In this document: positions 72 through 57,610 of the stretch, piece by piece
How the letters are laid out: each line of letters starts with the position of its first letter
Numbering within the stretch: the stretch's first letter is position 1
From: Macrostomum lignano
Lineage: Eukaryota
Reading direction: 5' to 3'
Length of the DNA stretch: 64,000 bases
Assembly: GCA_002269645.1 (NCBI GenBank)
Contig: NIVC01002482.1
Span: 1 to 64,000, forward strand
Notes under the pieces: generated by a model
What the model was told of the DNA's origin: nothing
Seen by the model: only the letters and a program-made list of their open reading frames with translations
Database searches by the model: none
Made by a program: the position numbers and the translations under genes

Positions 72-11787
<11,716 letters not shown>

Positions 11788-25155: not shown

Positions 25156-25170
25156 CCTGCGCGCCGGAAT

Positions 25171-26250
25171 GGCACAAGCGCGCATAAAGCTCCATAATGA
25201 CACAAGCGCGCATAAAGCTCCGTAATGGCACAAGCGCGCATAAAGCTCCATAATGACACAAGCGCGCATAAAGCTCCGTAATGACACAAGCGCGCATAAA
25301 GCTCCATAATGACACAAGCGCGCATAAAGCTCCGTAATGACACAAGCGCGCATAAATCTCCGTAATGACACAAGCGCGCATAAAGCTCCATAATGACACA
25401 AGCGCGCATAAAGCTCCGTAATGGCACAAGCGCGCATAAATCTCCGTAATGACACAAGCGCGCATAAAGCTCCGTAATGACACAAGCGCGCATAAAGCTC
25501 CATAATGACACAAGCGCGCATAAAGCTCCGTAATGACACAAGCGCGCATAAATCTCCGTAATGACACAAGCGCGCATAAAGCTCCATAATGACACAAGCG
25601 CGCATAAAGCTCCATAATGACACAAGCGCGCATAAAGCTCCGTAATGACACAAGCGCGCATAAAGCTCCATAATGACACAAGCGCGCATAAAGCTCCGTA
25701 ATGACACAAGCGCGCATAAAGCTCCATAATGACACAAGCGCGCATAAATCTCCGTAATGACACAAGCGCGCATAAAGCTCCATAATGACACAAGCGCGCA
25801 TAAAGCTCCATAATGACACAAGCGCGCATAAAGCTCCGTAATGACACAAGCGCGCATAAAGCTCCATAATGACACAAGCGCGCATAAAGCTCCGTAATGA
25901 CACAAGCGCGCATAAAGCTCCATAATGACACAAGCGCGCATAAATCTCCGTAATGACACAAGCGCGCATAAAGCTCCATAATGACACAAGCGCGCATAAA
26001 GCTCCATAATGACACAAGCGCGCATAAAGCTCCGTAATGACACAAGCGCGCATAAAGCTCCATAATGACACAAGCGCGCATAAAGCTCCGTAATGACACA
26101 AGCGCGCATAAAGCTCCATAATGACACAAGCGCGCATAAAGCTCCGTAATGACACAAGCGCGCATAAAGCTCCATAATGACACAAGCGCGCATAAAGCTC
26201 CGTAATGACACAAGCGCGCATAAACCTCTGTAACAGCACAAGCGCGCACC
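25171..26250. repeat. 28-bp minisatellite (atgacacaagcgcgcataaagctccRta), about 38 copies
   Basis: Period of 28 measured (agcgcgc at 25681 and 25709). Source of the three long minus-strand ORFs. Confidence 0.97.
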
Positions 26251-38443: not shown

Positions 38444-39060
38444 ATGGTAAGAAACTCGCAATCGTGCAATAAGATTTGACATAGTGACCAGGGACTTTTT
38501 TGGTCTCGGCTAGGTTCCAATTGCAAATACCTATCGTTAACTTTCAGGTAAAGCTGGCTAAGATTCTCCTACTAATTGCCGCATCCTTGGTGGGTTTCGG
38601 TTTCGCCTGTGATAACTGCGACAAGCCATCGAATCAGGATGTAGACAAGCGAGCGAGCTACATCCGCATGGGCAAACGTCCCTTTGATGAAGCCGACAAG
38701 CGAGCGAGCTACATCCGCATGGGCAAACGTCCCTTTGATGAAGCCGACAAGCGAGCAAGCTACATCCGCATGGGCAAGCGTCCCTTTGATGAAGCCGACA
38801 AGCGAGCAAGCTACATCCGCATGGGCAAGCGAGCAAGCTACATCCGCATGGGCAAACGTCCCTTTGATGAAGCTGACAAGCGAGCGAGCTACATCCGCAT
38901 GGGCAAGCGTCCCTTTGATGAAGCCGACAAACGAGCAAGCTACATCCGCATGGGCAAGCGAGCAAGCTACATCCGCATGGGCAAACGTCCCTTTGATGAA
39001 GCCGACAAACGAGCGAGCTACATCCGCATGGGCAAGCGGTTTTTCAGCAATGATGACTGA
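38444..39060 (+). CDS. Neuropeptide precursor, 171 aa: signal peptide, 9x ASYIRM-amide, 6x PFDEAD spacers
   Basis: ATG-only coding exon 38444-38446 (ATG|gtaaga), then exon 38548-39060 (acceptor ctttcag). MVKLAKILLLIAASLVGFGFA signal peptide; each ASYIRMG is flanked by KR dibasic sites, with Gly as amide donor. Confidence 0.95.
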
Positions 39061-42000: not shown

Positions 42001-44707
42001 TGACGGGTCGTGCTATTGATTGGCAGTAGCAGCGTGCGACGGGGTTCGTAGGTCTGAGTAGTTCTTAGTAAAGCCATGCAGAGATGCAGGACTCCGCACC
42101 TGCACCTGGATGTAGGGCGCGCTTTCAGAAAAAGCAAATAATAAAATCCGTCACTAAAGGCAGTATAGAAAACTGGAAACTTCTTAGGCATACATATATA
42201 CAACATGTAGGATTTTTGCATGGTAAGAAATTTTCAGTTTCTAGTACTTTAACTGACCATTCTCTCTGCACCTAAATGTACTAGACCGTCCGTTTTGCAA
42301 GGATGTCTTTTTGTCCGGAGTAGATTCACATGTACAGTATTTCTAGATAGAAGCTGTAAAAAATAGAAACAAGAAACACGCAAAATTCTCGCTTGTTCTA
42401 TTCCGCTATAAGCGGATGAAATTGCTAAAATTTAAATCTATGATTTGTTTTAAAGTATAATTTGATACTGGACAAAAAATTTTTTTCTCAACATCGTCAG
42501 ATCGTCAAATCCAGTCAGATCATGCAGTTTAGCAGATTTAAATACATTCGTACAGTATGGTTATGTATGGCCAGGTCACCAACCCTGTCCTTGCTGGATT
42601 TCGATTTCAATTATCAATCTGGATGGACATTCTAGACGGGGGGCGGGGGCCATGGCCAAGTGGGGGCATCATGGTACCTGGTCCGCCACTTTTAAAACGT
42701 TCCGACACCTGATCAGGGAAGGATTAGACTTTATTGTTTTATATAACATTTCTTTGCATTATTCGCCGTTATTGGGCGAAAAATATTTTGTTTGTTTCAA
42801 TGTTAATCATCTTAATTGCTTTACGTTTTTTACAGAATTTTATTTCATTTCCGCATTTAACTCGCTTTTTTACGCAAATGCACTGACTTAGCCTTAACTA
42901 CAGCACTCTGAGTATAAGAAGGCTTTATGCAGCTACAATTCCTTTTTCTTCGCAAAAATGGAACGCATGCAGTAGCTCAATCTAATTACAAGGAAAAAAA
43001 ACGCTTGAAAAGAAAAACAGCTTCTTACTAATTACCTCGGAGCTGGATTTGATTTTCAGAATTCAAATAAAACTATAAGAGCAACATGCCCCTGATCCAG
43101 AAGTACATGTATGGGCATTCGAGTTTTACTTTACTTTTCAATTCTCTTTTTGAAAGCTAACTTAATGCTATTTACTAAAAACTAAATACAGTATCTAAAT
43201 AATACATTGTACATGTACATGCATGTGTAATTGCTAAAAATCGAGCTAAATCTTTCCCATCAAAAGCAATTGCGCCAGATCAGAAATCCATAAACGTTTT
43301 ACAGGTATCAAAGATCTACATGTACGCGTACACCTGTACAAGAAACGACGCCTCCATGCTGTATTCCCTGATCAGAACTATATGCGTAAGAAGTAGTAGC
43401 CCCTACTTTTTTATTGGATGCTTCGCCAATGCGACACTGGGCTATTTTTGCGTTTACCTCCTCTACTCTCTACTTTGTCAGTAGAGGAATGCTAACACTC
43501 CACCCACACTTATTGTAAGCACTGGAAAAGTGCAGCTTACATCGCAGCGACCCTGCGACCTCTGTCGAGTCTCGACCGGGGCTGCCCGAGCAAATCAGCT
43601 CTAGACTGGTTAATTGGCCTCAAGGCCCAGGGGGGACAATAGCGAAGCTAAGTTTTGAGGGCCGCGCCAGCAGCCTGCGGGCGCGTGGCACAGAAGACTC
43701 GCAGCAAATGCTTTGGGGGGTTTGGGGGGAGAGAAACTGCCCTGCCATGCTCAAGCTATTTTTTGTTCTGCATTGTGTCTATGCGTTCTCGTTGAATATT
43801 AAATACACTGCCTTGAATAATATTCGGCACGGAGAATTCTGATATTTGAGCCTTACGCTCATGCCAGGGCCTTTTGGAGGCAAGTATGCTTGTAAGTCTC
43901 AAGCAGAAGATCTATAACAGGAAAAAACTTGGCTGTTAATTACAATAGGCAAGAGTTTTAACATTTGACAGCTACAGCTAGTATTATTTTTGGACCATGA
44001 TCTGCGATCGCTGGCCAGCAGCTAGAGTCGAACTTGGCTTTGGATTTTGTTCGCAGTTTTAAAATTGCCTTTAAATTCTATTTTTGTCTATTCTCTAAAA
44101 AACACCGTAAAGGCTCAGCCACTAATTCCCAACCCAAACTGAAGTACAAGGAAGTGAGAGAGAGAGAGAGAGATGTGCAAGTCGATCACACATAATGGGC
44201 CTCCCGGTCTTAATCATATGAAGAATGAAGAGCCTTACAGTGGTATAAGTGAACCTTAACAAAAAGCGTAATATCACCGGCGTCATCGCAGTAATAGAAT
44301 GGCAACAATTTAACTTATGAAAATATTTAGAAATCGAGGCTGGACTCGGGTCGACCCTTTCGGCAAATCATACATTCTGAGCACCATTGCTTTTGTCGTT
44401 TTGAAGTTTTGATAAGGCCAAACAGATAAATATAGTCTTGAATCTGAATGACTTTTTCTTACATATATTGTTTAAATTTCGATTGAAAATATAGATCGAA
44501 TATTTTTGATTCATAAAGTGTATAGAAAGCAAGTGGCAAGTGATAAGTCAAGCCCAAGGTAACAATAACAAATAATTCTAGCCTGCTAATGCTATAACAG
44601 TAACAGCAGCAGTAAAATGAAAGAAAGTTGTTTAAAGCTTACTCGCATTCTTCTAGTAATTTTCAATGTAATTTTCGTGGTAAGTAACAATTTTAACCTG
44701 TAACTTT

Positions 44708-44967
44708 GGGCCTTTTCATATTACCAATTCCAGAACCAGAATCGGTTCGGAATTCCAAGAAAAACAGCAGTATAACTATTAAACTCTGTTAATATTTGAC
44801 TGCCTTAACAGCCTCACTTTGCACGATTTTTTACTTTCTTCTTGGCGATTGTCATTCAATAATAAAAACTTTATAGCACGTATCTCCCTCTAATTATGGA
44901 GACAAAAAGTTATACTTCACAAATTGGTTCTGGTTCTGGAACCAGAACAAGTAATATGAAAAGGCCC
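44708..44967. mobile_element. MITE, possibly PIF/Harbinger-type
   Basis: Perfect 17-bp TIR GGGCCTTTTCATATTAC / GTAATATGAAAAGGCCC, subterminal ccagaaccag repeats, flanked by TTT on both sides (possible 3-bp TSD). Confidence 0.65.
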
Positions 44968-46395
44968 TTTAACTTGTCCTATACTATTCCTAGTGGCTGG
45001 GATTATTTAAAGGAGATCTAGTGGTAGTCATTAACTGATTAAATACTTTTTGGGTGTATTTTAATAATTTGTATACAAATTTAAGTTTTTGTTTATACTT
45101 TGACTTGTTATTTTGAAATGTTATTTTGCTGCTAAATAATTACATAAACACAAAAACTTATTTGTTTAAAAGGTTGTTTTTCTATTTTTCTTTAATTAAC
45201 AATTTTTAGCTATTTCTAGTCAATATGATAAATAAAAGTTCAAAATTATTATTTCCTTTTTTTGATTTTTTCTTTACAAAAACTTTGCAACACATTTATA
45301 GAGATTTTAGTGACTTAGGAACTGTTGCTAATTAAACAGTATTTTTATCTTCAATATAAATTTAAAATAAAAATAAATTTGTTTTAAAAAATTGATAAAT
45401 GCCTAATATTTGGTTATATTTATAATAGGCCTCCAGTTTTTATAACAATTTCTTAGAAAAAGTTGCATTTCAAAAAATGTACTACTGTTGTTATACTATG
45501 CAAATATTAAAAATATTTCTTATATGCAAAATATTCTAAATATTCTATGTATTAATACTTTGTTTTAAATACTAGGGAAATTTTACTATACATAGGAGTC
45601 AGCTGGGAGGAAAAATAAATAACCTTGTGAACCTTTTCTTGTACCATTGTTTCGAACATTGATCAAGCTTTAAATCAGCCTTGGGCTTGTGATCACTCAT
45701 GTTACTTATTTCAAGTAGTGGATAGTGACATAGGAGTTGCCCCAAGATTGGGAGTTCAGTCCGTTCTCAGAGAATGAGAAATCCTAGACTTAGGAGTCTA
45801 GTAACCCACCTTTAGAAGGCAGAATTCCTACCACAGGGTAGAGAAATCCAGGCTTAGAGTCTGAGAAACCTGCCTCAGGGCAGAATACCCAGCAAAGTGC
45901 ACTGTGACCCTCTGATCCCGGGAACACCCAGGACTGAGAATAATATCTTTAGAGGAGTATACGAATATGATAGACAGTGCCTAAAAGACCACTCAGGCCA
46001 GAAAGTACAATAGAAGTACAGATGCTACCAATAGAGGTACATACGCTACCAATAGAAGTACAGATGCTACCAATAGAAGTACATGCACTACTAGTAAAAG
46101 GCAAGTAATAACTAGCAATATTAACAAGAAGGAATAACCCCTGTAACAACTTTGGTGGCAGCTTTAGGACAGTCAATAATAGGAATTAGAAAAGTAGCCC
46201 TACAACAGCTAGTGGCTAACCGGTGGGATCATTCATAAAGACAGAAGAAACCCCCCACTACAACATATAAAAGTATAAATTCTTGTATAGTAAAATAATT
46301 TAATATAAATGAGCATAATTAAAAATGAAAGTATGTTTTTTATTTGCTTTAATATCATTGGTTTTAATTTGTTAAACCCTAACCTCTATTCATAG

Positions 46396-49300
46396 GTAAT
46401 TGGCAGTGGCCTGTGTGGTGCAGCAATCTATGTGGTGCTGGCTGAACCACCATTCAGCAAAGAGGTGCCAGCTATAGCCAAGTATGTGTGCATTGGCCTG
46501 CACGGCTGCCTTGGACTGGCTGGCCTGTTGGGAGTCTGCACTGCTGTCTGGCCTAAGAAATGCATGCTGGCAAGCTTTGTACCAATCATGATTGCCACCT
46601 ATGCCAGCCACCTGGCACTGGCCGCTTCCCTGATAGTCAATTCTGCTCTGGTAATGCAACTCCTCACTGATTTATTTGCATTTGTCTTTTCTGTCTATGC
46701 CTAGGGAAATAGCTGGGGACATTACCCAGTGGCTTCTTGCCGAGCTTTATTAACACTGCTCACAGGTGGAGTTGCTGAGATGGGAGATGCCAATGCTCAC
46801 AGGTGGAGTTGCTGAGATGCCAATGCTCACGGCTGGAGTTGCTGAGATGCCAATGCTCACGGCTGGAGTTGCTGAGATGCCAATGCTCACGGGTGGAGTT
46901 GCTGAGATGCCAATGCTCACGGCTGGAGTTGCTGAGATGCCAATGCTCACAGGTGGAGTTGCTGAGATGCCAATGCTCACGGCTGGAGTTGCTGAGATGC
47001 CAAGGCTCACAGGTGGAGTTGCTGAGATGCCAAGGCTCACGGGTGGAGTTGCTGAGATGCCAATGCTCACAGGTGGAGTTGCTGAGATGCCAATGCTCAC
47101 GGCTGGAGTTGCTGAGATGCCAAGGCTCACGGGTGAAGTTGCTGATGCCAAGGCTCACGGCTGGAGTTACTGCGATGCCAATGCTCACAGGTGGAGTTGC
47201 TGAGATGCCAATGCTCACGGCTGGAGTTGCTGAGATGCCAAGGCTCACGGCTGGAGTTACTGCGATGCCAAGGCTCACGGCTGGAGTTACTGCGATGCCA
47301 ATGCTCACGGGTGAAGTTGCTGATGCCAATGCTCACGGGTGAAGTTGCTGAGATGCCAAGGGTCAAAGGGGATGCTAGTATCTGACGTTAGAAAACTCCC
47401 TTCTACGGGTCATATTTTTTCTGGACAAATGTTTTTATTTAATTTAACACACAGAAAATACTACTGAACAGTGTAAGTAGCTTATTTCTATCATACTAAA
47501 AATACAAATTCAGGTTAAAGAGACGATTGGCGAGTCCTTCGATACCTGGCAGCGCAACTATCAGTATAGTAATGATGGCAATGCTGGCCTAATGGACATC
47601 CTTCACAAGCGGGTTGGTTCTGTTATTTCTTGTTTCTTATTCTGATTTCTGCACACGGGGTCAAAAGTTTGACAATCAAGAAAATCTCTTATTTTTCAGT
47701 TTTACTGCTGCGGCGGTCAGTCCTACAGGGACTACAGAGGGGCCGCAGGCGGCGATACCCTGCAGATTCCTTGGTCCTGCTGCAACTCAGAGAAGCTGGG
47801 CCCTACAGAGTGCGAGCCCAAGCCGTACTCGCTGCCGTTTGAGCTGGCCTATGATAGGGTGAGCATTAGCTTAAGGTGCTGTAGATGACATTGTCCCACA
47901 ACTGGCGCTGATTCTGCCTATTCCTCATCTGACTCCTGGGCACACAAGCGCGCCAATGCTGTACGCAGGCGCGCACTCGCTCCCACAGGGTGTACAGCAG
48001 CCCCCTGACTTTCTAATCGTAAGGCCATGTACACTCTGTGCCTTGGGGGTTGGCCCTCATGGTGTGAATCGCCACTTGTTGCTAATAGTAGATTTTTTAT
48101 CCAAAACCAGTGGCAATTGCTAAACTTCAAATGGGGTTGTAGACGCGAGCTTAAATAGTACATAAGCTCAGATGCGACATGGCTATCCTCAATCGCTTTA
48201 TTCCAAGGCTGCCGTTCCGTTGTCATGGAAACTACCTGGCGCGCGATCCGCATCGGCCTATTCGTTTCTGTTGGCCTGACAGCGCTGGAGGTGAATTAAT
48301 TCGCTACTGAGTTTTCCGATTTTTCTACTTATAGTAATGTGAAATGTTTTAGCGGTGTGTTTGATAGCCAAGTAAGGGCGGGTTGTAGCCTAGTGGTTTG
48401 ACTTAGAGCGTCGGACTCACGACGAGGTCGAGGGTTCGATTCGTGACCCACTCGGAACAATTTGTGTCCTTGAGCAAGACGCCTAACTCTGCATTGCTTC
48501 AGTTCACCCAGCTGTAAAATGGGTGCCAGCATTAGATGGGGTTAATTGAGGAAGTGTGGCGACCACCCAGTCCTTGGACTGAACAGCCGTACGCAGCCTT
48601 CAGATGCGCCGCGCAATAGCTACGGCTGAGCTGTCGGTTGCACATCTGGCCCAAATAGGGCAGATGTAATTAATTTATAATATTATTATCCATATCCAGG
48701 GACGACTTTAATTAGAACTGGTATCACATAATGAGCAACATTTCACGCTACTATATAATAAGTAGGCTAATTGGCAAAGCATATTTGAATAGTCTCTGCC
48801 AGTTCTCAGAACCTTAATAATTGTGGCTGTGGATTTTGTATCAGTTTTCTTGGTAAGTTTTTCTACTTTCAGTTCAGTAGTAAGGAAGCATGCGTAAGCT
48901 ATTTCACGACACGAAAGGTAGTTGAGAGTGACTTATAGGCATAATGTACATTTGCCAGCGCCACTGATAATGTACATGGCAGTCAGCATTTGGCTGAAAC
49001 ACCGAGAAAGGCAATTAAATGGAGGCGGGCGGGGTAGAGGTTTCGTGCGGCAAGACGCGGTCGGGGAATTCAACCGGGGGGAGTTAAGAGGGCCAATAAA
49101 TGAGTCTTTTTAATGTACATAGCAGCTTTAGATATAGAACACCGAGAAAGGCAATTAAATGGAGGCGGGCAGGGTAGAGGTTTCGTGCGGCAAGACGCGG
49201 TCGGAGGGGTTCAGCTGGGGGAGGTGTAAGAGGGCTAATAAAACGACTTTTGCCCTAAAGTACGAATATTAAAGGTTTAGTTAGTTTACATGATTTAGTT

Positions 49301-50310: not shown

Positions 50311-50879
50311 TGGGTAGCCCGTAGGTAACTACCCAGTTAACTTTACTTCCAAACGTGTGGTTTTTTCAGATTACTTTTAACGCCTGCAAAAAGCAGTTAA
50401 CACCCCCCTATTTCAGTTGCTTAAATTTATTTTCTGCTGTAAATATGTCAATTATTTTTTCGTGTCAATTTTTAGGTTTTGCCATTTTACTCATTTTGCA
50501 TTCGTCATTGGATAGTGTTAGGAAATTGTTTCTATATTTTTAAGTTATGTTTTGTGAAAAATTTATCGAACTGCAGCTGGTGTATTTCAAATGCAAGCGT
50601 TTGTTATTACTTAATAAATGTTAAAATGATAGCTCCTGTTTTAATAAGCGCTTCATAATATGGCAATGTAAAGCCTGCATCCCGATTTTATCAAGCAACC
50701 CTCCTCATAAAAAGTCATTTTCTTGGACCTCTTCGTGGTTTTGTATTATCGATCCAACTGTGTTTGTAGTTTTTTGTGTGCTTTAAGTATCATCGTCTTT
50801 CTTTTCACTTCTGTCTGTGTTAGCGTCTATCTTCGTATCTGGCCTAAATGCTGTCTCCAATGGTGGCGCCTCTGTCTTC

Positions 50880-51517
50880 TAGATGGGCGCCCCTGTCTCC
50901 TAGATATAGGCGCCCCTGTCTCCTAGATATAGGCGCCCCTGTCTCCTAGATATAGGCGCCCCTGTCTCCTAGATATAGGCGCCCCTGTCTCCTAGATATA
51001 GGCGCCCCTGTCTCCTAGATATAGGCGCCCCTGTCTCCTAGATATAGGCGCCCCTGTCTCCTAGATATAGGCGCCCCTGTCTCCTAGATATAGGCGCCCC
51101 TGTCTCCTAGATATAGGCGCCCCTGTCTCCTAGATATAGGCGCCCCTGTCTCCTAGATATAGGCGCCCCTGTCTCCTAGATATAGGCGCCCCTGTCTCCT
51201 AGATATAGGCGCCCCTGTCTCCTAGATGGGTGCCCCTGTCTCCTAGATATAGGCGCCCCTGTCTCCTAGATGGGTGCCCCTGTCTCCTAGATATAGGTTC
51301 CCCTGTCTCCTAGATATAGGTGCCCCTGTCTCCTAGATATAGGCGCCCTTGTCTCCTAGATATAGGCGCCCCTGTCTCCTAGATATAGGTGCCCCTGTCT
51401 CCTAGATATAGGCGCCCTTGTCTCCTAGATATAGGCGCCCCTGTCTCCTAGATATAGGCGCCCCTGTCTCCTAGATATAGGCGCCCCTGTCTCCTAGATA
51501 TAGGCGCCCTGTCTCCT
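50880..51517. repeat. 23-bp minisatellite (atataggcgcccctgtctcctag), about 27 copies
   Basis: Period of 23 measured (gtctcc at 50941 and 50964). Confidence 0.97.
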
Positions 51518-52585
51518 TGGCAAAAGTTGGTCAGCTCCTGTCATTCGTCGAGCTTAGTCACCTTTTTTATGTATGGGCAATTGGGGGGGGGGTGCCCCCC
51601 CCCCTGAGTACGCCACTGGCTCTCTCCTACATCTCAGAACCTTGTCTGAAAAACCCTTGACATCAAACATTCTGCATGTCCCCACCTGTACCGCAATACT
51701 CTGCTGCATGTGCAAATTCGTTTTATATAGCTTTCAGTTTACTAATGATTGAGACGCCATATTTACCTGTCAACTGGCTTAAACTGGCTTTATCAGGCTT
51801 AAATCTAGTTCAAGATGTCGAGACTTTTCAAAGTATTTATTAAATCCACGCTTGCCTGCTTTGTTGTGCGTTTTTCTAGTTTTAGATTTGCTATACTCGT
51901 ATATAAAGTTCTGGTCAAATCCTCGATACTGCCTGCAATTCAATGCTCTATAATATTACACAGAACTACTATATATTTACTATTTCCTATGAATTGCAAT
52001 ACTAATTCTTCGTATAGACTAACTTCAGTAGTATTTTCGAGCGCGAAAGAACAAAATTGGACATATTTGTGCAATGTTATAAAATATAATTCACATCTTT
52101 ACCTACCATTAACTATATTTTATAAAGGTTTTGCCTTTGAATTTTGTTGAAATCCGGATTTATCATTCTCTGCTCTTATTGTTGTTAAACTTTAACCACG
52201 GCAGTGCAAATGTATTTATAGACCTGTTTATTAGCGGGCAAAGCCAAGGAGATCTTCAACCAAAAGACTATGCATAGCTTTGCAAGCCACGCATCCAAGA
52301 AACTCTATCCAGACTCTCGTTTTAGTTCTCCCTGGCAAAGACGCGGACTCGCTGTGTCTCGAGAATCCATGAAGTGTCTCTATTCTGCATTGTTTTCATT
52401 CTATTCAAAACTGCCTTACGGCCCTGTGCTGCGCCGCTGCGGATATGGCATTGCAACTCTTAGCCCGGATTTGAGAGGCCTTATCTAGGATATTCCATCG
52501 TCTATAAAGACAGCGTCAGTATTAGCTTATTACAGAATCCAGTATCTCCATATAAGCCTAAGGTCTAAAATCTGTTCTTGCAAAC

Positions 52586-54209
52586 ATGAAACCTCTGCTG
52601 CTGACTGCGCTCCTCTTGCTGGGCCTCGCGGCGGCCGCCTCCGCATTCGCCGCCTCACCTGCTGACGCTGAGGGCTCTGCAGCTACGGAGGAGATCGCCA
52701 ACGATCTTGAAAGCGTTGACAATCCCGACGAGCTGGAGAAGAGCGAGTACGCGCCCGTAAGCAATTATTTTTAGGGAAATACGCTAATACATGTTGTGTA
52801 TTCTTTTCTTGCTACTCTTCTTCAGTAGCCAATCTCCTATAGAATGCACACACGTGACTTACTACGAGCTAATTGTAAAACTAACAAAGTTGACGCTTCT
52901 GGATTTCTATTGAAGGAATCGGAGGAGGAGCTCGAAACCAAACGGAGTCCTGCTCCAGATCTAGAGCCAACCGCCAGCCGGCAGCGCAGAATCGAGAGTT
53001 CGAGTCGATCGCGCCGTACCCGGCGATTCCTTCAACGCATATTGGACGCCTCACCTGCTGCCGCTGAGGACTCTGCAGCTACGGAGGAGATCGGCAACGA
53101 CCTTGGCAGCGTCGATAAGCCCAATGAGCTGGAGGAGAGCGAGTACGCGCCCGTAAGTATGCGTGTTTAATACGCTATATACATGTACAAATATGAATTG
53201 TGAGCCTCCACATGTACAATAAGAGATTCACTTTAAAGTCTTGTCACGCTACTCTTCAGTAGTTGATTTCGATAGAATACACACACGAATTAGTATTGCA
53301 ATTTCAAGATTTCCACAATCGGAGCGCTTATTGTGTTTCTATTGAAGGAATCGGAGGAGCTCGAAGCCAAACGGAGTCCTGCTCCAGATCGAGAGCCGAC
53401 CGCCCGCCCGCAGCGGAGAGTGAAGTCGAGTAACTCGGCCGCCTCACCAGCTGCTCCCGTTGAGGATTCTGAAGCTACAGAGGAGATCGCCAACGAACTT
53501 GAAAGCGTCGACAATCCCGATGAGCTGGAGAAGAGCGAATACGCGCCCGTACGTATGCGTGTTTGAGTAGAGGTCGCACGGATTTTTGGGCAAATAAAAC
53601 ATGTACAAATGGGAATTGTGAGCTATACTTGTGTCCTATAAGAGATTCGCTTGAAATTCTTTTCTTGCTATTATATTAGAGGATAATCTTCTAGAATGCA
53701 CAAACGTTACTACTGTAAATGAAAGATTTCCACAATCGGAGCGCTTTTTTGTATTTCTATTGAAGGAATCGGAGGAGCTCGAAACCAAGCGGAGTCCTGC
53801 CCCAGATCGAGAGCCGACTGCCAGCCCGAAGCGCAGAGTGAGGTCGAGTCGCTTGCGCCGCATCCTGAGCTTCTTTCGACGCGCCAGCTGGAGAAGCCGC
53901 CGCGGTAGCGGCAGCAAGTCGACTGCAATGTCGGACTCCGCCGCCGAGTGGCGTCGCCGCCGCGGACGTCGCTTCCGTGGTCGGCTGATCCGCCGTCTGC
54001 GCAGTCTGGCAGACCTGCTGGACGGCCTGAACCGGACCACCGTCGGCTGCAGCACCGTCGACGAGAGCCAGCGCCGCAGTCTGGGCCGCTGGGCCCGCCG
54101 GCTGAAGCCCTTCCTGCTGCCGCGGAAGAACTCAACGGCTCCGATTGAGGCTGAGCCTCGGTCGCCCGAGGCAGTGGAAGAGGCTGTCAACGACGACAGC
54201 GCTGAGTAG
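52586..54209 (+). CDS. Orphan secreted precursor, 350 aa: signal peptide, then repeated acidic propeptide / KR / Arg-rich amphipathic modules
   Basis: Exons 52586-52756, 52916-53152, 53348-53548, 53766-54209, all phase 0. Introns share ends (...EYAP|gta...tttctattgaag|ESEE...). Hydrophobic leader MKPLLLTALLLLGLAAAASA; TATAAA at 52503. Confidence 0.85.
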
Positions 54210-54644
54210 GAGGTTTACTGAGTGCTCTGGTGACTTTTCTATCTAAAAATTACATGCCAGTTTCAACCTTCATCACATGGATATTGTTATAACGCTGCTA
54301 ACAGAAAACTATCGCTAAGCCCTACAGTTAATCAAATTAGTTAATATCAGTTTTCCTTTTACTATTATTATTCTGATACTTATTAGTGTACATGTATTTT
54401 GTACGCTTGTACACTGACCAAATCGCAAAACAAACATTACTGAGTGGATACAAATATACATGTTCTTCTTTGATAGTTGACACTCCTACTGGACTTTCTA
54501 ATATTAATAAACTTCAAGCATCTTTTATATAATAATTCCGAAGTTACCGAATCACAATGCTCCAGTATCCAAACTCTGTTAGGCACCACATGTAGTTGTT
54601 CATTATAAATACATGTGGGTAGTTTACACTGACTTAATGCATTT

Positions 54645-55570
54645 ATGTCACTTATCTAACCCTCTGATATGTCACTGATCTAACCCTCTGAAATGTCACT
54701 GATCTAACCCACTGATATGTCACTGATCTAACCCACTGATATGTCACTGATCTAACCCACTGATATGTCACTGATCTAACCCACTGATATGTCACTGATC
54801 TAACCCACTGATATGTCACTGATCTAACCATCTGATATGTCACTGATCTAACCCACTGATATATCACTGATCTAACCCACTGATATGTCACTGATTTAAC
54901 CCAATGGTGTCACTGACCTAACCCATGATGTCACTGATCTAACCCTCTGATATCACTAATCTAACCCATGATGCCACTAATCTACCCTCTGATATGTCAC
55001 TAATCTACCCTCTGATATGTCACTAATCTAACCCACTGAAATGTCACTGATCTAACCCACTGATATGTCACTGATCTAACCCTCTAATATGTCACTGATC
55101 TAACCCTCTGAAATGCTACTGATCTAACCCACTGAAATGTCACTGATCTAACCCACTGGTATGTCACTGATCTAACCCACTGATATGTCACTGATCTAAC
55201 CCACTGATATGTCACTGATCTAACCCTCTGAAATGTCACTGATCTAACCCACTGATATGTCACTGATCTAACCCACTGATATGTCACTGATCTAACCCAC
55301 TGATATGTCACTGATCTAACCCACTGATATGTCACTGATCTAACCATCTGATATGTCACTGATCTAACCCACTGATATATCACTGATCTAACCCACTGAT
55401 ATGTCACTGATTTAACCCAATGGTGTCACTGACCTAACCCATGATGTCACTGATCTAACCCTCTGATATGTCACTGATCTAACCCACTGGTGTCACTGAT
55501 TTAACCCACTGTGTCACTGATCTAACCCACTGATATGTCACTGATCTAACCCATGATGCTACTGATCGAA
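54645..55570. repeat. 24-bp minisatellite (gatatgtcactgatctaacccact) with a higher-order 516-bp duplication
   Basis: 8-aa period in the ORF track; an identical run of variant units begins at 54891 and at 55407 on the minus strand. Confidence 0.95.
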
Positions 55571-56214: not shown

Positions 56215-57610
56215 CTAACGCCACGCATCCGTCGCGGCTGCAGTTGCCGACGCCGACTGTCGTCGGTCAAAACGCGGCGACGCCGGCGCGGTCTCCTCCT
56301 CTTCGGCGCTGTCTACGTCAGAATCGGCGCCGCTACCGCTGGCGCCAGACGCGGCGGATTGGTTCTCCTTAGCCGACTTGACCAATTGTCTGCCAGCGCC
56401 GCTTTGTTGGCGCCGGCGCGCCGGTGTAAAAAACTGATAGGCGTGCCTGTGGCACAGCAGCAGTTGGCGCTGGGAATGCCCGACGGCGCTAGTCGCTGGC
56501 GCCGATGTTGGCGCTGGAGCTGGCGTTATTGAAGATTTGCGACCTTTCGACTTCGGTCGAATGCTGGTCGCGACACTATCGTCCTCGTCGACATCGACAT
56601 CCAGGCCGCTGATGTCGAATGGGTCTCGGGGCGCTGCCGACTTCCTGCTGCCGCCGCCGGCGCCGCTTCTTTTCTGCTTTGGCGCCATTTTGCTCTGCTT
56701 CTTTTCCGCTTCTGGCTTCCTCGGCTGCCGCTTGGCGCCTGTGGAACATTGAGAAATCAAACGGAGGAAGGTCAGGCTCTGCAGGCTGGGCCGCTACCCC
56801 CCTCTGTACTGTAGGCTGGCCACCTACCCACCCCCTACTGTAGGCTGGGCACCTACCCACCCCCTACTGTAGGCTGGGCACCTACCCACCCCCTACTGTA
56901 GGCTGGGCACCTACCCACTCCCTACTGTAGGCTGGCCACCTACCCACCCCCTACTGTAGGCTGGCCACCTACCCACTCCCTACTGTAGGCTGGCCACCTA
57001 CCCACTCCCTACTGTAGGCTGGCCACCTACCCACCCCCTACTGTAGGCTGGGCACCTACCCACTCCCTACTGTAGGCTGGCCACCTACCCACCCCCTTAC
57101 TGTAGGCTGAGCAACTACCCGCCCCGTGTAGGTTAGGCACCTCTTCCCAATGTGTATTATGGCACGTCACTCACCTGAAGCCTTGTTCGACACCTGTGCT
57201 GCCTTTTTAACTCCATCAACTTTGGTGGCAGAACTCTTGGTGGCAGCATCCTTGGTAGCAGAACTCTTGGTGGCAGCATCCTTGGTAACAGAACTCTTGG
57301 TGGCAGCATCCTTGGTAACAGAACTCTTGGTGGCAGCATCCTTGGCAGCAGAACTCTTGGTGGCAGCACCCTTGGCAGCAGAGAACTTGGCAACAGGCGG
57401 AGCAGACTGCCTTCTGCGGTCCTGGGTAGCCAATCCAGGCAACGCAGCAATTGCCTGAACCGCAGCCTGCCGCCTTGATGGTGGTCGCCGGTTTTGCACA
57501 TCAGCCTTTGCTGCTAGAGGCGACGAAGCAGGCTTGGAAATGCCGCCATTGGCTGCTGAAATGCCCAGTCTGTTCTGAGCTGTCTGCTTTGCTTGGCGCT
57601 TTGGTGGAGC
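56215..57610 (-). CDS. Partial gene for a basic, low-complexity protein with a coding 10-aa repeat (AATKSSxxKD)n
   Basis: Open frame from about 57610 to 57175, donor TCAG|gtgagt, acceptor ttccacag| at 56738, phase 1 consistent; continues GAKRQPRKPEAEKKQ...DAWR* (56215). 5' end and identity unknown. Confidence 0.55.
56790..57130. repeat. 29-bp minisatellite (ctacccaccccctactgtaggctgggcac) filling the intron of the minus-strand gene
   Basis: Period of 29 measured (56821, 56850). Confidence 0.95.

Follow-up and report, generated by a model that had tools for sequence, protein, structure and literature searches.

The granins (chromogranin A/B and the secretogranins) are acidic, disordered proteins of the regulated secretory pathway with many dibasic sites and potential Tyr-sulfation and Ser-phosphorylation sites, and Arg-rich fragments embedded in them, such as catestatin and secretolytin, are antimicrobial in vertebrates. 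Amphibian preprodermaseptin and magainin precursors carry a signal peptide and an acidic propiece that ends in KR directly before a Lys-rich peptide, and the magainin precursors are multi-copy. In the honeybee precursors of melittin and apidaecin, a run of dipeptides contiguous with the mature peptide is removed stepwise by dipeptidyl peptidase. In Hydra, the arminin and periculin precursors combine a signal peptide, an anionic part and a cationic C-terminal part (Arg-rich in arminin) in one chain, and these families are genus-restricted and evolve rapidly by duplication (PMC10945409). Here we describe the gene Mlig021339, located at 52586–54209 on the + strand of a 64,000-nucleotide stretch (hereafter the window) of nuclear DNA from the free-living marine flatworm Macrostomum lignano. 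Coordinates on the window are the same as record positions on contig NIVC01002482.1. Mlig021339 is a lineage-restricted four-exon gene that is RNA-supported via its annotation; it is already known as a GenBank hypothetical protein and is without description in the searchable literature. Its product is best filed among lineage-restricted secreted proproteins of bipartite charge. Most of the effectors that free-living flatworms use in innate immunity, in reproduction and in adhesion are lineage-restricted and little characterised, and since transgenesis and RNA interference are available in M. lignano, a secreted orphan of this species is directly testable.

Gene structure, internal repeats and copies

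Conceptual splicing of positions 52000–54800 resolved the locus into four exons and three introns, all with GT..AG boundaries and all in phase 0. The coding region runs from an ATG at 52586 to a stop codon whose last base is 54209, and the spliced coding sequence of 1053 nt encodes a protein of 350 residues. The boundary sequences are kept across all three introns, with exons ending in GCGCCC before a GTA(A/C)G donor (GTAAG or GTACG) and acceptors ending in CTATTGAAG. The conceptual product is identical to GenBank entry PAA57484.1 ("hypothetical protein BOX15_Mlig021339g2") at 100% of positions over 100% of the length. For this assembly, the GenBank gene models come from a genome-guided transcriptome built from RNA-seq (STAR/StringTie/TACO, TBONE, TransDecoder) and are not ab initio predictions (PMC5730564). 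Because the conceptual splice equals a deposited protein annotated from RNA-seq, the existence of the four-exon mRNA has good, though indirect, support. A first-pass annotation of this DNA had proposed a four-exon spliced gene, and the exact match bears it out; every element described in that annotation was found where it had been placed.

All features of the gene are on the + strand. Exon 1 (52586–52756) encodes the signal peptide (52586–52651, residues 1–22) and the 5' half of acidic module 1 (ASPADAEGSAATEEIANDLESVDNPDELEKSEYAP). Exon 2 (52916–53152) encodes ESEEELETKR followed by SPAPDLEPTASRQ-RR, a basic tail (IESSSRSRRTRRFLQRILD) and the 5' half of acidic module 2, and exon 3 (53348–53548) encodes ESEELEAKR followed by SPAPDREPTARPQ-RR, a truncated tail (VKSSNSA) and the 5' half of acidic module 3. 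Exon 4 (53766–54209) encodes ESEELETKR followed by SPAPDREPTASP-KRR, the Arg-rich domain and an acidic C-terminal tail, and ends with the stop codon. Intron 1 (52757–52915) is 159 nt long, runs from GTAAGC to TTGAAG and can be aligned with introns 2 (53153–53347, 195 nt) and 3 (53549–53765, 217 nt), with many indels. Motif scans located a TATAAA box, the putative core promoter, at 52503–52508, about 80 bp 5' of the start codon and with no ATG between the two, and an AATAAA polyadenylation signal at 54506–54511, about 300 nt after the stop codon, so that one such element flanks the transcription unit on either side. The older UniProt/WormBase ParaSite models of the gene (P0002, P0005 and P0006) differ from the RNA-seq-based GenBank model: two of them use an alternative acceptor within intron 2, 39 nt upstream of exon 3, and thereby insert 13 residues (ISTIGALIVFLLK, encoded by 53309–53347), and one contains several frameshifts. 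No contig placement was found for P0006.

Comparison of the window with itself by BLASTN aligned 52645–53445 with 53041–53864 at 72% identity over 877 columns (E = 2e-126). In a three-way DNA alignment the repeated unit consists of the 3' half of one exon, the following intron and the 5' half of the next exon, at an offset of 396–419 bp, in agreement with the tandem duplication of about 420 bp that had been proposed. Unit 1 (52652–53047) encodes residues 23–101 across intron 1, unit 2 (53048–53440) encodes residues 102–167 across intron 2 and has lost its basic tail, and unit 3 (53441–53882) begins at residue 168 and extends across intron 3, with homology to unit 1 that reaches into the first Arg-rich helix. 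Between units the exonic parts are 87–91% identical without indels, and the introns, with their many indels, are 44–69% identical when gaps are counted. Synonymous divergence (dS, Nei-Gojobori) between units is 0.20–0.36 and the ratio of non-synonymous to synonymous divergence (dN/dS) is 0.33–0.71. The duplications are therefore fairly recent and constraint on the modules is moderate rather than strong. It had also been claimed that the acidic blocks are conserved while the basic cargo diverges; the blocks are indeed alike, and at these divergence values part of their conservation comes from the recency of the duplications.

At the DNA level, the start of the basic region of exon 4, SSRLRRILSFFRRAS, is homologous to the variable Arg-rich tail of unit 1, SSRSRRTRRFLQRIL. 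The ancestral unit therefore already had a basic tail, which unit 2 lost. As reconstructed from these alignments, the ancestral gene encoded a signal peptide, an acidic block, KR, a Pro-rich peptide, RR and a basic tail, and was later triplicated internally. The three modules are proposed to have arisen through two rounds of unequal crossing-over of the half-exon/intron/half-exon unit of approximately 400 bp.

Searches with the protein returned no relative outside M. lignano in the collections covered, and it is in this sense that we call the gene an orphan, as the first-pass annotation had done; the presence of other Macrostomum proteomes in those collections was not established. A scan of Pfam-A at E values up to 10 gave only two noise matches (SLX9 and BNIP2), with no amphibian preproregion family and no Granin domain, and a sequence search of the PDB gave 0 matches. 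A word-indexed search of 5.8 billion proteins returned M. lignano entries only, and an exhaustive phmmer scan of 1.84 billion representative proteins gave just two matches, the older M. lignano models P0002 and P0006, one with the 13-residue insertion and the other with frameshifts. The UniRef name carried by the older models, "Retinitis pigmentosa 1-like 1", was rejected as a Glu-rich low-complexity artefact, since no such match passes any threshold. Within the window, tBLASTN revealed no paralogue elsewhere.

Four homeologous copies of the gene (g1–g4) are 99–100% identical, as is expected because the M. lignano genome is neopolyploid, and the order tetraspanin gene (upstream), Mlig021339, unrelated minus-strand gene (downstream) is kept on two other contigs (NIVC01003771.1 and NIVC01004342.1). 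The exons of g2 differ from those of g3/g4 at 6 of 1053 positions, all in exons 3–4, and five of the six differences are non-synonymous (T154I, S163P, L237R, P334S and D347Y). When window positions 52000–54900 were compared, the 5' flank, exons 1–2 and intron 1 showed four mismatches in approximately 1170 nt, and intron 3 and the 3' flank showed 5–8% divergence plus indels. This uneven divergence may reflect gene conversion between homeologs or selection on exons, the six coding differences being too few to interpret or to measure selection.

Charge architecture and its possible roles

The N-terminus (MKPLLLTALLLLGLAAAASAFA, followed by AS) has a basic n-region, a hydrophobic core with a Kyte-Doolittle 10-residue mean of up to 2.7, and a c-region with small residues, in both cases Ala, at positions −3 and −1 of the predicted signal peptide. 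AlphaFold2 predicts a helix at residues 2–21. These are textbook features by inspection and they confirm the signal peptide that had been proposed. Each of the three modules that follow consists of an acidic block of about 43 residues (−13 to −15), then KR, a Pro-rich 12–13-mer of the form SPAPD[LR]EPTA.. and finally [QK]RR. The first-pass annotation had quoted three acidic blocks, a KR-SPAPD motif and four Arg-rich strings, and each of these is present verbatim.

The commonest residues in the protein are E (48), R (47), A (46) and S (45). The net charges of the acidic blocks are −15, −13 and −15, that of the Arg-rich C-terminal domain (53838–54128, the 97 residues 228–324) is +24 and that of the last 26 residues is −7, which gives the mature protein a net charge of −10 with 68 Asp and Glu residues in total. 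The fraction of charged residues in the mature chain is 0.38, and the segregation of charge along it reaches z = 7.9 against 2000 shuffles, so the proposed separation of acidic and basic parts holds. An AlphaFold2 model made from single-sequence input, of low confidence (mean pLDDT 53), shows the acidic modules as disordered and places helices outside the signal peptide only in Arg-rich segments, at residues 87–101, 231–245, 260–295 and 303–320, where the local pLDDT is about 70. Two N-x-S/T sequons are present, N292 and N325, and the single Cys is C298. Of these, N292 and C298 are situated between helices of the C-terminal domain, and N325 is in the acidic tail, beyond the helices and just past the Arg-rich domain. 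On these predictions the protein is a block polyampholyte, mostly disordered and probably secreted.

The functional readings were weighed on this protein architecture. The one that we place first, and hold only tentatively, is that Mlig021339 encodes a charge-neutralised secretory proprotein in which the anionic modules mask the Arg-rich parts and cleavage frees the cationic C-terminal portion. The protein would enter the secretory pathway as a block polyampholyte that neutralises itself and would be kept in gland or neurosecretory granules, its anionic modules masking and condensing the Arg-rich parts in the manner of the anionic propieces of cationic defence peptides. A furin/PC-type convertase would then cut at the conserved KR and [QK]RR sites and part the anionic propieces and small Pro-rich peptides from the cationic portion, which could act extracellularly on polyanionic targets, most plausibly microbial membranes or surfaces. 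Several observations count in favour of this reading: KR and [QK]RR are invariant across all three units, promoter and polyadenylation elements flank the gene, the homeologous copies are nearly identical, and KR serves as a processing site in this genome, since it flanks the ten copies of a short peptide in the precursor described below. The RNA-seq-based gene model, the signal-peptide features, the duplication of introns along with exons, the moderate purifying selection between units, the indel-free exons, the segregated charge blocks, and the predicted helices, hydrophobic moments and composition of the Arg-rich segments also count for it, as does the gene order kept at homeologous loci.

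The nearest functional analogues, by analogy of design, may be the taxon-restricted antimicrobial peptides of bipartite charge in Hydra (PMC10945409) and the cationic peptides derived from granins. Mlig021339 shares with the Hydra precursors the signal peptide, the anionic part, the cationic C-terminal part and the narrow taxonomic range, which defines an architectural class and not a homology family, and the sequences themselves show no similarity. Rapid evolution by duplication is common to both; the Hydra families expand by whole-gene tandem duplication, whereas Mlig021339 has expanded internally to three modules in one gene with no paralogue beyond the homeologs. Periculins have Cys patterns whereas Mlig021339 has its single Cys, and antimicrobial activity, shown for the Hydra peptides, would for Mlig021339 be a prediction from its architecture. 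The protein also has the properties by which granins are defined functionally, being an acidic, disordered, predicted secretory protein with multiple dibasic sites (net charge −10, 68 Asp and Glu residues and 17 basic runs). Potential Tyr-sulfation and Ser-phosphorylation sites and embedded Arg-rich sequence are further points of likeness. In contrast to granins it is much smaller, has no disulfide loop and shows neither a Granin Pfam domain nor any homology in the Pfam and HMMER searches, and the modular tandem-repeat build is a feature of Mlig021339 and not of granins.

The same charge pattern also suits a secretion of reproductive or other glands, which would act as an intact or coarsely cleaved disordered polyampholyte with no discrete antimicrobial peptides made. 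This explanation is doubtful in its own right and yet nearly as likely as the charge-neutralised proprotein. Candidate sources would be prostate seminal fluid, the cement or shell gland, rhabdite or mucus secretion and adhesive-organ material, and the charged blocks would drive self-coacervation and granule packing and confer material or partner-manipulating properties. The charged fraction of 0.38 together with strong block segregation speaks for it, as such segregation is a signature of self-coacervating secreted proteins including the sandcastle-worm and mussel adhesives, and the N292 sequon and the one Cys within the basic domain would suit a protein that remains intact. An in situ hybridisation screen of M. 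lignano identified 76 prostate-limited transcripts, with signal peptides in 38 of the 65 that could be translated and with many of them unannotated (PMC5977470). Those transcripts (Mlig-pro1-76) were defined by prostate-limited in situ signal and by tail-limited, socially plastic expression in RNA-seq, and carry identifiers of the older MLRNA transcriptome (PMC5977470), for which no correspondence to Mlig021339 was found in the text searched. Reproduction-related genes evolve fast in Macrostomum (PMC7336406), and the mostly non-synonymous homeolog differences are as expected of rapidly evolving reproductive proteins. On the other side, no expression record was found that places Mlig021339 in any gland, and the KR and [QK]RR sites, invariant in every unit, look like processing sites.

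All three Tyr residues of the protein (55, 134 and 201; codons 52748–52750, 53144–53146 and 53540–53542) are in an invariant E-Y-A-P-E-S-E-E motif, which straddles every exon-intron junction, and an S-E-E site is present in each acidic module. The context of the motif resembles that of tyrosine-sulfation sites, with candidate S-x-E secretory-kinase sites alongside. These blocks could themselves be the active products, 43–50 residues long and possibly Tyr-sulfated or Ser-phosphorylated, with the Arg-rich part as an intramolecular counter-ion during storage; we regard this as very improbable. They would then act as the negatively charged factor by which the Lys/Arg-rich adhesive Mlig-ap1 is released, or as Ca2+-binding, granin-like matrix peptides. 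Three blocks of −13 to −15, each with its invariant Tyr and S-E-E site, agree with such a role, the contexts being consensus for tyrosylprotein sulfotransferase and for Fam20C-type kinases. The adhesion model for M. lignano likewise calls for a secreted, negatively charged releasing molecule, which is predicted and still unidentified (PMC6410801). However, the same work predicts this molecule to be "small" and describes releasing vesicles of low protein density that contain PAS-positive polysaccharide, and an equal positive charge secreted along with the blocks would oppose release, as cationic peptides block detachment (PMC6410801). Nor was there a record of tail-plate expression for Mlig021339.

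Processing sites and candidate peptides

Seventeen basic runs of two or more residues occur in the protein. When cleavage was simulated, basic sites bounded just two kinds of element in every one of the three units, the acidic blocks and the 12–13-mers SPAPDLEPTASRQ, SPAPDREPTARPQ and SPAPDREPTASP. In three of three units KR is followed by one of these conserved, net-neutral Pro-rich peptides and then by the second basic site, [QK]RR, and not directly by a cationic helix. Because the Pro-rich peptide and [QK]RR come between, the layout is unlike that of magainin and dermaseptin, where KR directly precedes the Lys-rich peptide, and because the cationic segment is not contiguous with the dipeptides in the simulated cleavage, it is also unlike that of melittin and apidaecin. 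The likening of the precursor to these three systems in the first-pass annotation therefore does not stand.

The resemblance to the amphibian precursors extends to the signal peptide, the acidic propiece, a KR upstream of more basic sequence and the multi-copy build. Apart from the intervening peptide, the cationic segments of Mlig021339 differ in being Arg-rich rather than Lys-rich and full of internal RR pairs, so that no KR stands directly before a cationic peptide free of internal dibasic sites, and the Pfam-A and HMMER searches gave no match to the dermaseptin/brevinin preproregion profile. As in the melittin and apidaecin precursors, a basic site is immediately followed by X-Pro dipeptides, here S-P and A-P. 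There are only two of these, followed by D-[LR]-E-P-T-A and not by a cationic peptide; the cationic segment starts at least 13 residues later, after another basic site, and there is neither a repeated EAEPEAEP-type spacer nor any homology.

The four Arg-rich strings proposed as cargo peptides each contain two to five internal dibasic pairs, and a convertase that cuts at KR would be expected to reduce them to pieces of 1–7 residues. The cargo of unit 1, RRTRRFLQRIL, continues into acidic block 2 with no basic site to separate them. The helical hydrophobic moments of the four strings on the Fauchere-Pliska scale (0.38–0.68) were considered to fall within the range of reference antimicrobial peptides in the same calculation (0.20–0.52), and the highest 18-residue moments in the protein, 0.55–0.60, are at residues 271–293 and 303–320. 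The Arg-rich strings are 36–39% hydrophobic and 32–46% Arg, a composition that would be compatible with membrane-active or cell-penetrating peptides, as a matter of physico-chemistry and not of function. The claim that this is a polyprotein releasing several cationic peptides thus survives in one part, as helix propensity outside the signal peptide is confined to the Arg-rich parts, and is weakened in the other by the internal dibasic sites and the weak amphipathicity.

An internal control for the processing sites is provided by a multi-copy neuropeptide precursor at 38445–39060 (+), 14 kb upstream of Mlig021339. The first exon of this gene is a single codon (the ATG at 38445), and after an intron the second exon runs to 39060, with the repeat array at 38644–39038. 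In the encoded protein, ten copies of KR-ASYIRMG-KR come after a signal peptide (VKLAKILLLIAASLVGFGFA); most copies are spaced by PFDEAD, and two pairs adjoin directly. The peptide predicted from it, ASYIRM-amide, resembles the YIRFamide-type peptides of flatworms in form; the string ASYIRMG itself was not found in the searchable literature. The two precursors have the KR grammar in common, and the identical short peptides, the Gly donor and the short acidic spacers are found only in the ASYIRMG precursor.

By comparison with this precursor, Mlig021339 might be a multi-copy peptide-hormone or neuropeptide precursor whose products are the three Pro-rich peptides (SPAPD[LR]EPTA[SR][RP]Q and SPAPDREPTASP), with the acidic blocks and the Arg-rich tail as spacers, although we consider this improbable. 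It has the signal peptide, the repeated units and the acidic spacers of the class, with several near-identical short peptides flanked by basic sites: the three 12–13-mers are the only short elements with basic sites on both sides in every unit, they are among the best-conserved stretches between units, and a genuine multi-copy precursor with the same KR grammar lies in the same window. Unlike ASYIRMG, whose identical copies are separated by 6-residue spacers, none of the three copies has a C-terminal Gly for amidation, and the only G-basic-basic motif in the protein, at residue 270, is within an Arg run. The repeat of Mlig021339 is mostly long acidic block, so that the "spacers" would be three to eight times the length of the peptides and are themselves conserved, and the peptides differ among themselves, with a moderate dN/dS between units. 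The large non-repeated basic domain, 97 residues long and helix-prone, would be left unexplained, and the searchable neuropeptide literature contained no match.

The charge-neutralised proprotein, with cleavage to free its cationic portion, has its own difficulties, and the following observations weigh against it. RR pairs occur throughout the Arg-rich domain, and exhaustive convertase action would be expected to destroy the cationic helices rather than release them. The N292 sequon and C298 suggest that the C-terminal domain may be a single glycosylated, possibly dimeric unit and not a set of free peptides. The amphipathicity of the four cargo strings is weakly above that of shuffled sequences (P = 0.05–0.19), and only the segment 260–295 reaches P = 0.011, while the helices themselves come from the low-confidence single-sequence model. 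In one homeolog the putative hydrophobic face has the substitution L237R, and five of the six coding differences between homeologs change the residue. The gene identifier and six peptide strings were absent from 8.3 million full texts of the searchable literature, which yielded no expression, peptidomic or functional record, and the identifier was likewise absent from the supplements of M. lignano papers that were searched.

A more specific form of the same proposal, in which Mlig021339 would be the first flatworm modular host-defence polyprotein, encoded by a genus-restricted gene, with internally duplicated anionic propieces neutralising an Arg-rich domain that secretion would set free as one or more membrane-active antimicrobial peptides, appears unlikely. 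If it were true, such a polyprotein would be a convergent counterpart of the Hydra arminins and of the vertebrate granin-derived antimicrobial peptides, and with the Arg-rich domain as a defence effector it would provide the first antimicrobial-peptide family for Macrostomorpha and a clear example of a precursor that grew through half-exon/intron/half-exon duplication. Should the protein turn out instead to serve in seminal fluid or as a gland material, its design as a block polyampholyte would bear on granule packing and coacervate biology. At present Mlig021339 is one among many uncharacterised secreted orphans, and sequence alone does not choose between these roles.

Genomic neighbourhood

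The upstream neighbour of Mlig021339 is a tetraspanin gene (PF00335) at 44617–48279 (+), and the downstream neighbour, at 56215–57586 (−), encodes a 311-residue protein without a Pfam domain. The latter product is rich in Lys, Ser and Ala and looks disordered, and as its visible open reading frame has no signal peptide, there is no sign of a cluster of gland genes. An antisense open reading frame of 184 codons at 53636–54190 was dismissed as a by-product of GC-rich Arg codons, as it spans intron 3 and is without support. Satellite and minisatellite arrays crowd the window, for which Tandem Repeats Finder gave 41 rows, including arrays at 54644–55557, 50865–51517, 25164–26248, 10888–11645 and 7608–8423. 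Mlig021339 itself is flanked by an array of 23-mers upstream and by an array of 24-mers (TATGTCACTGATCTAACCCACTGA, 39 copies) that begins about 430 bp past the stop codon.

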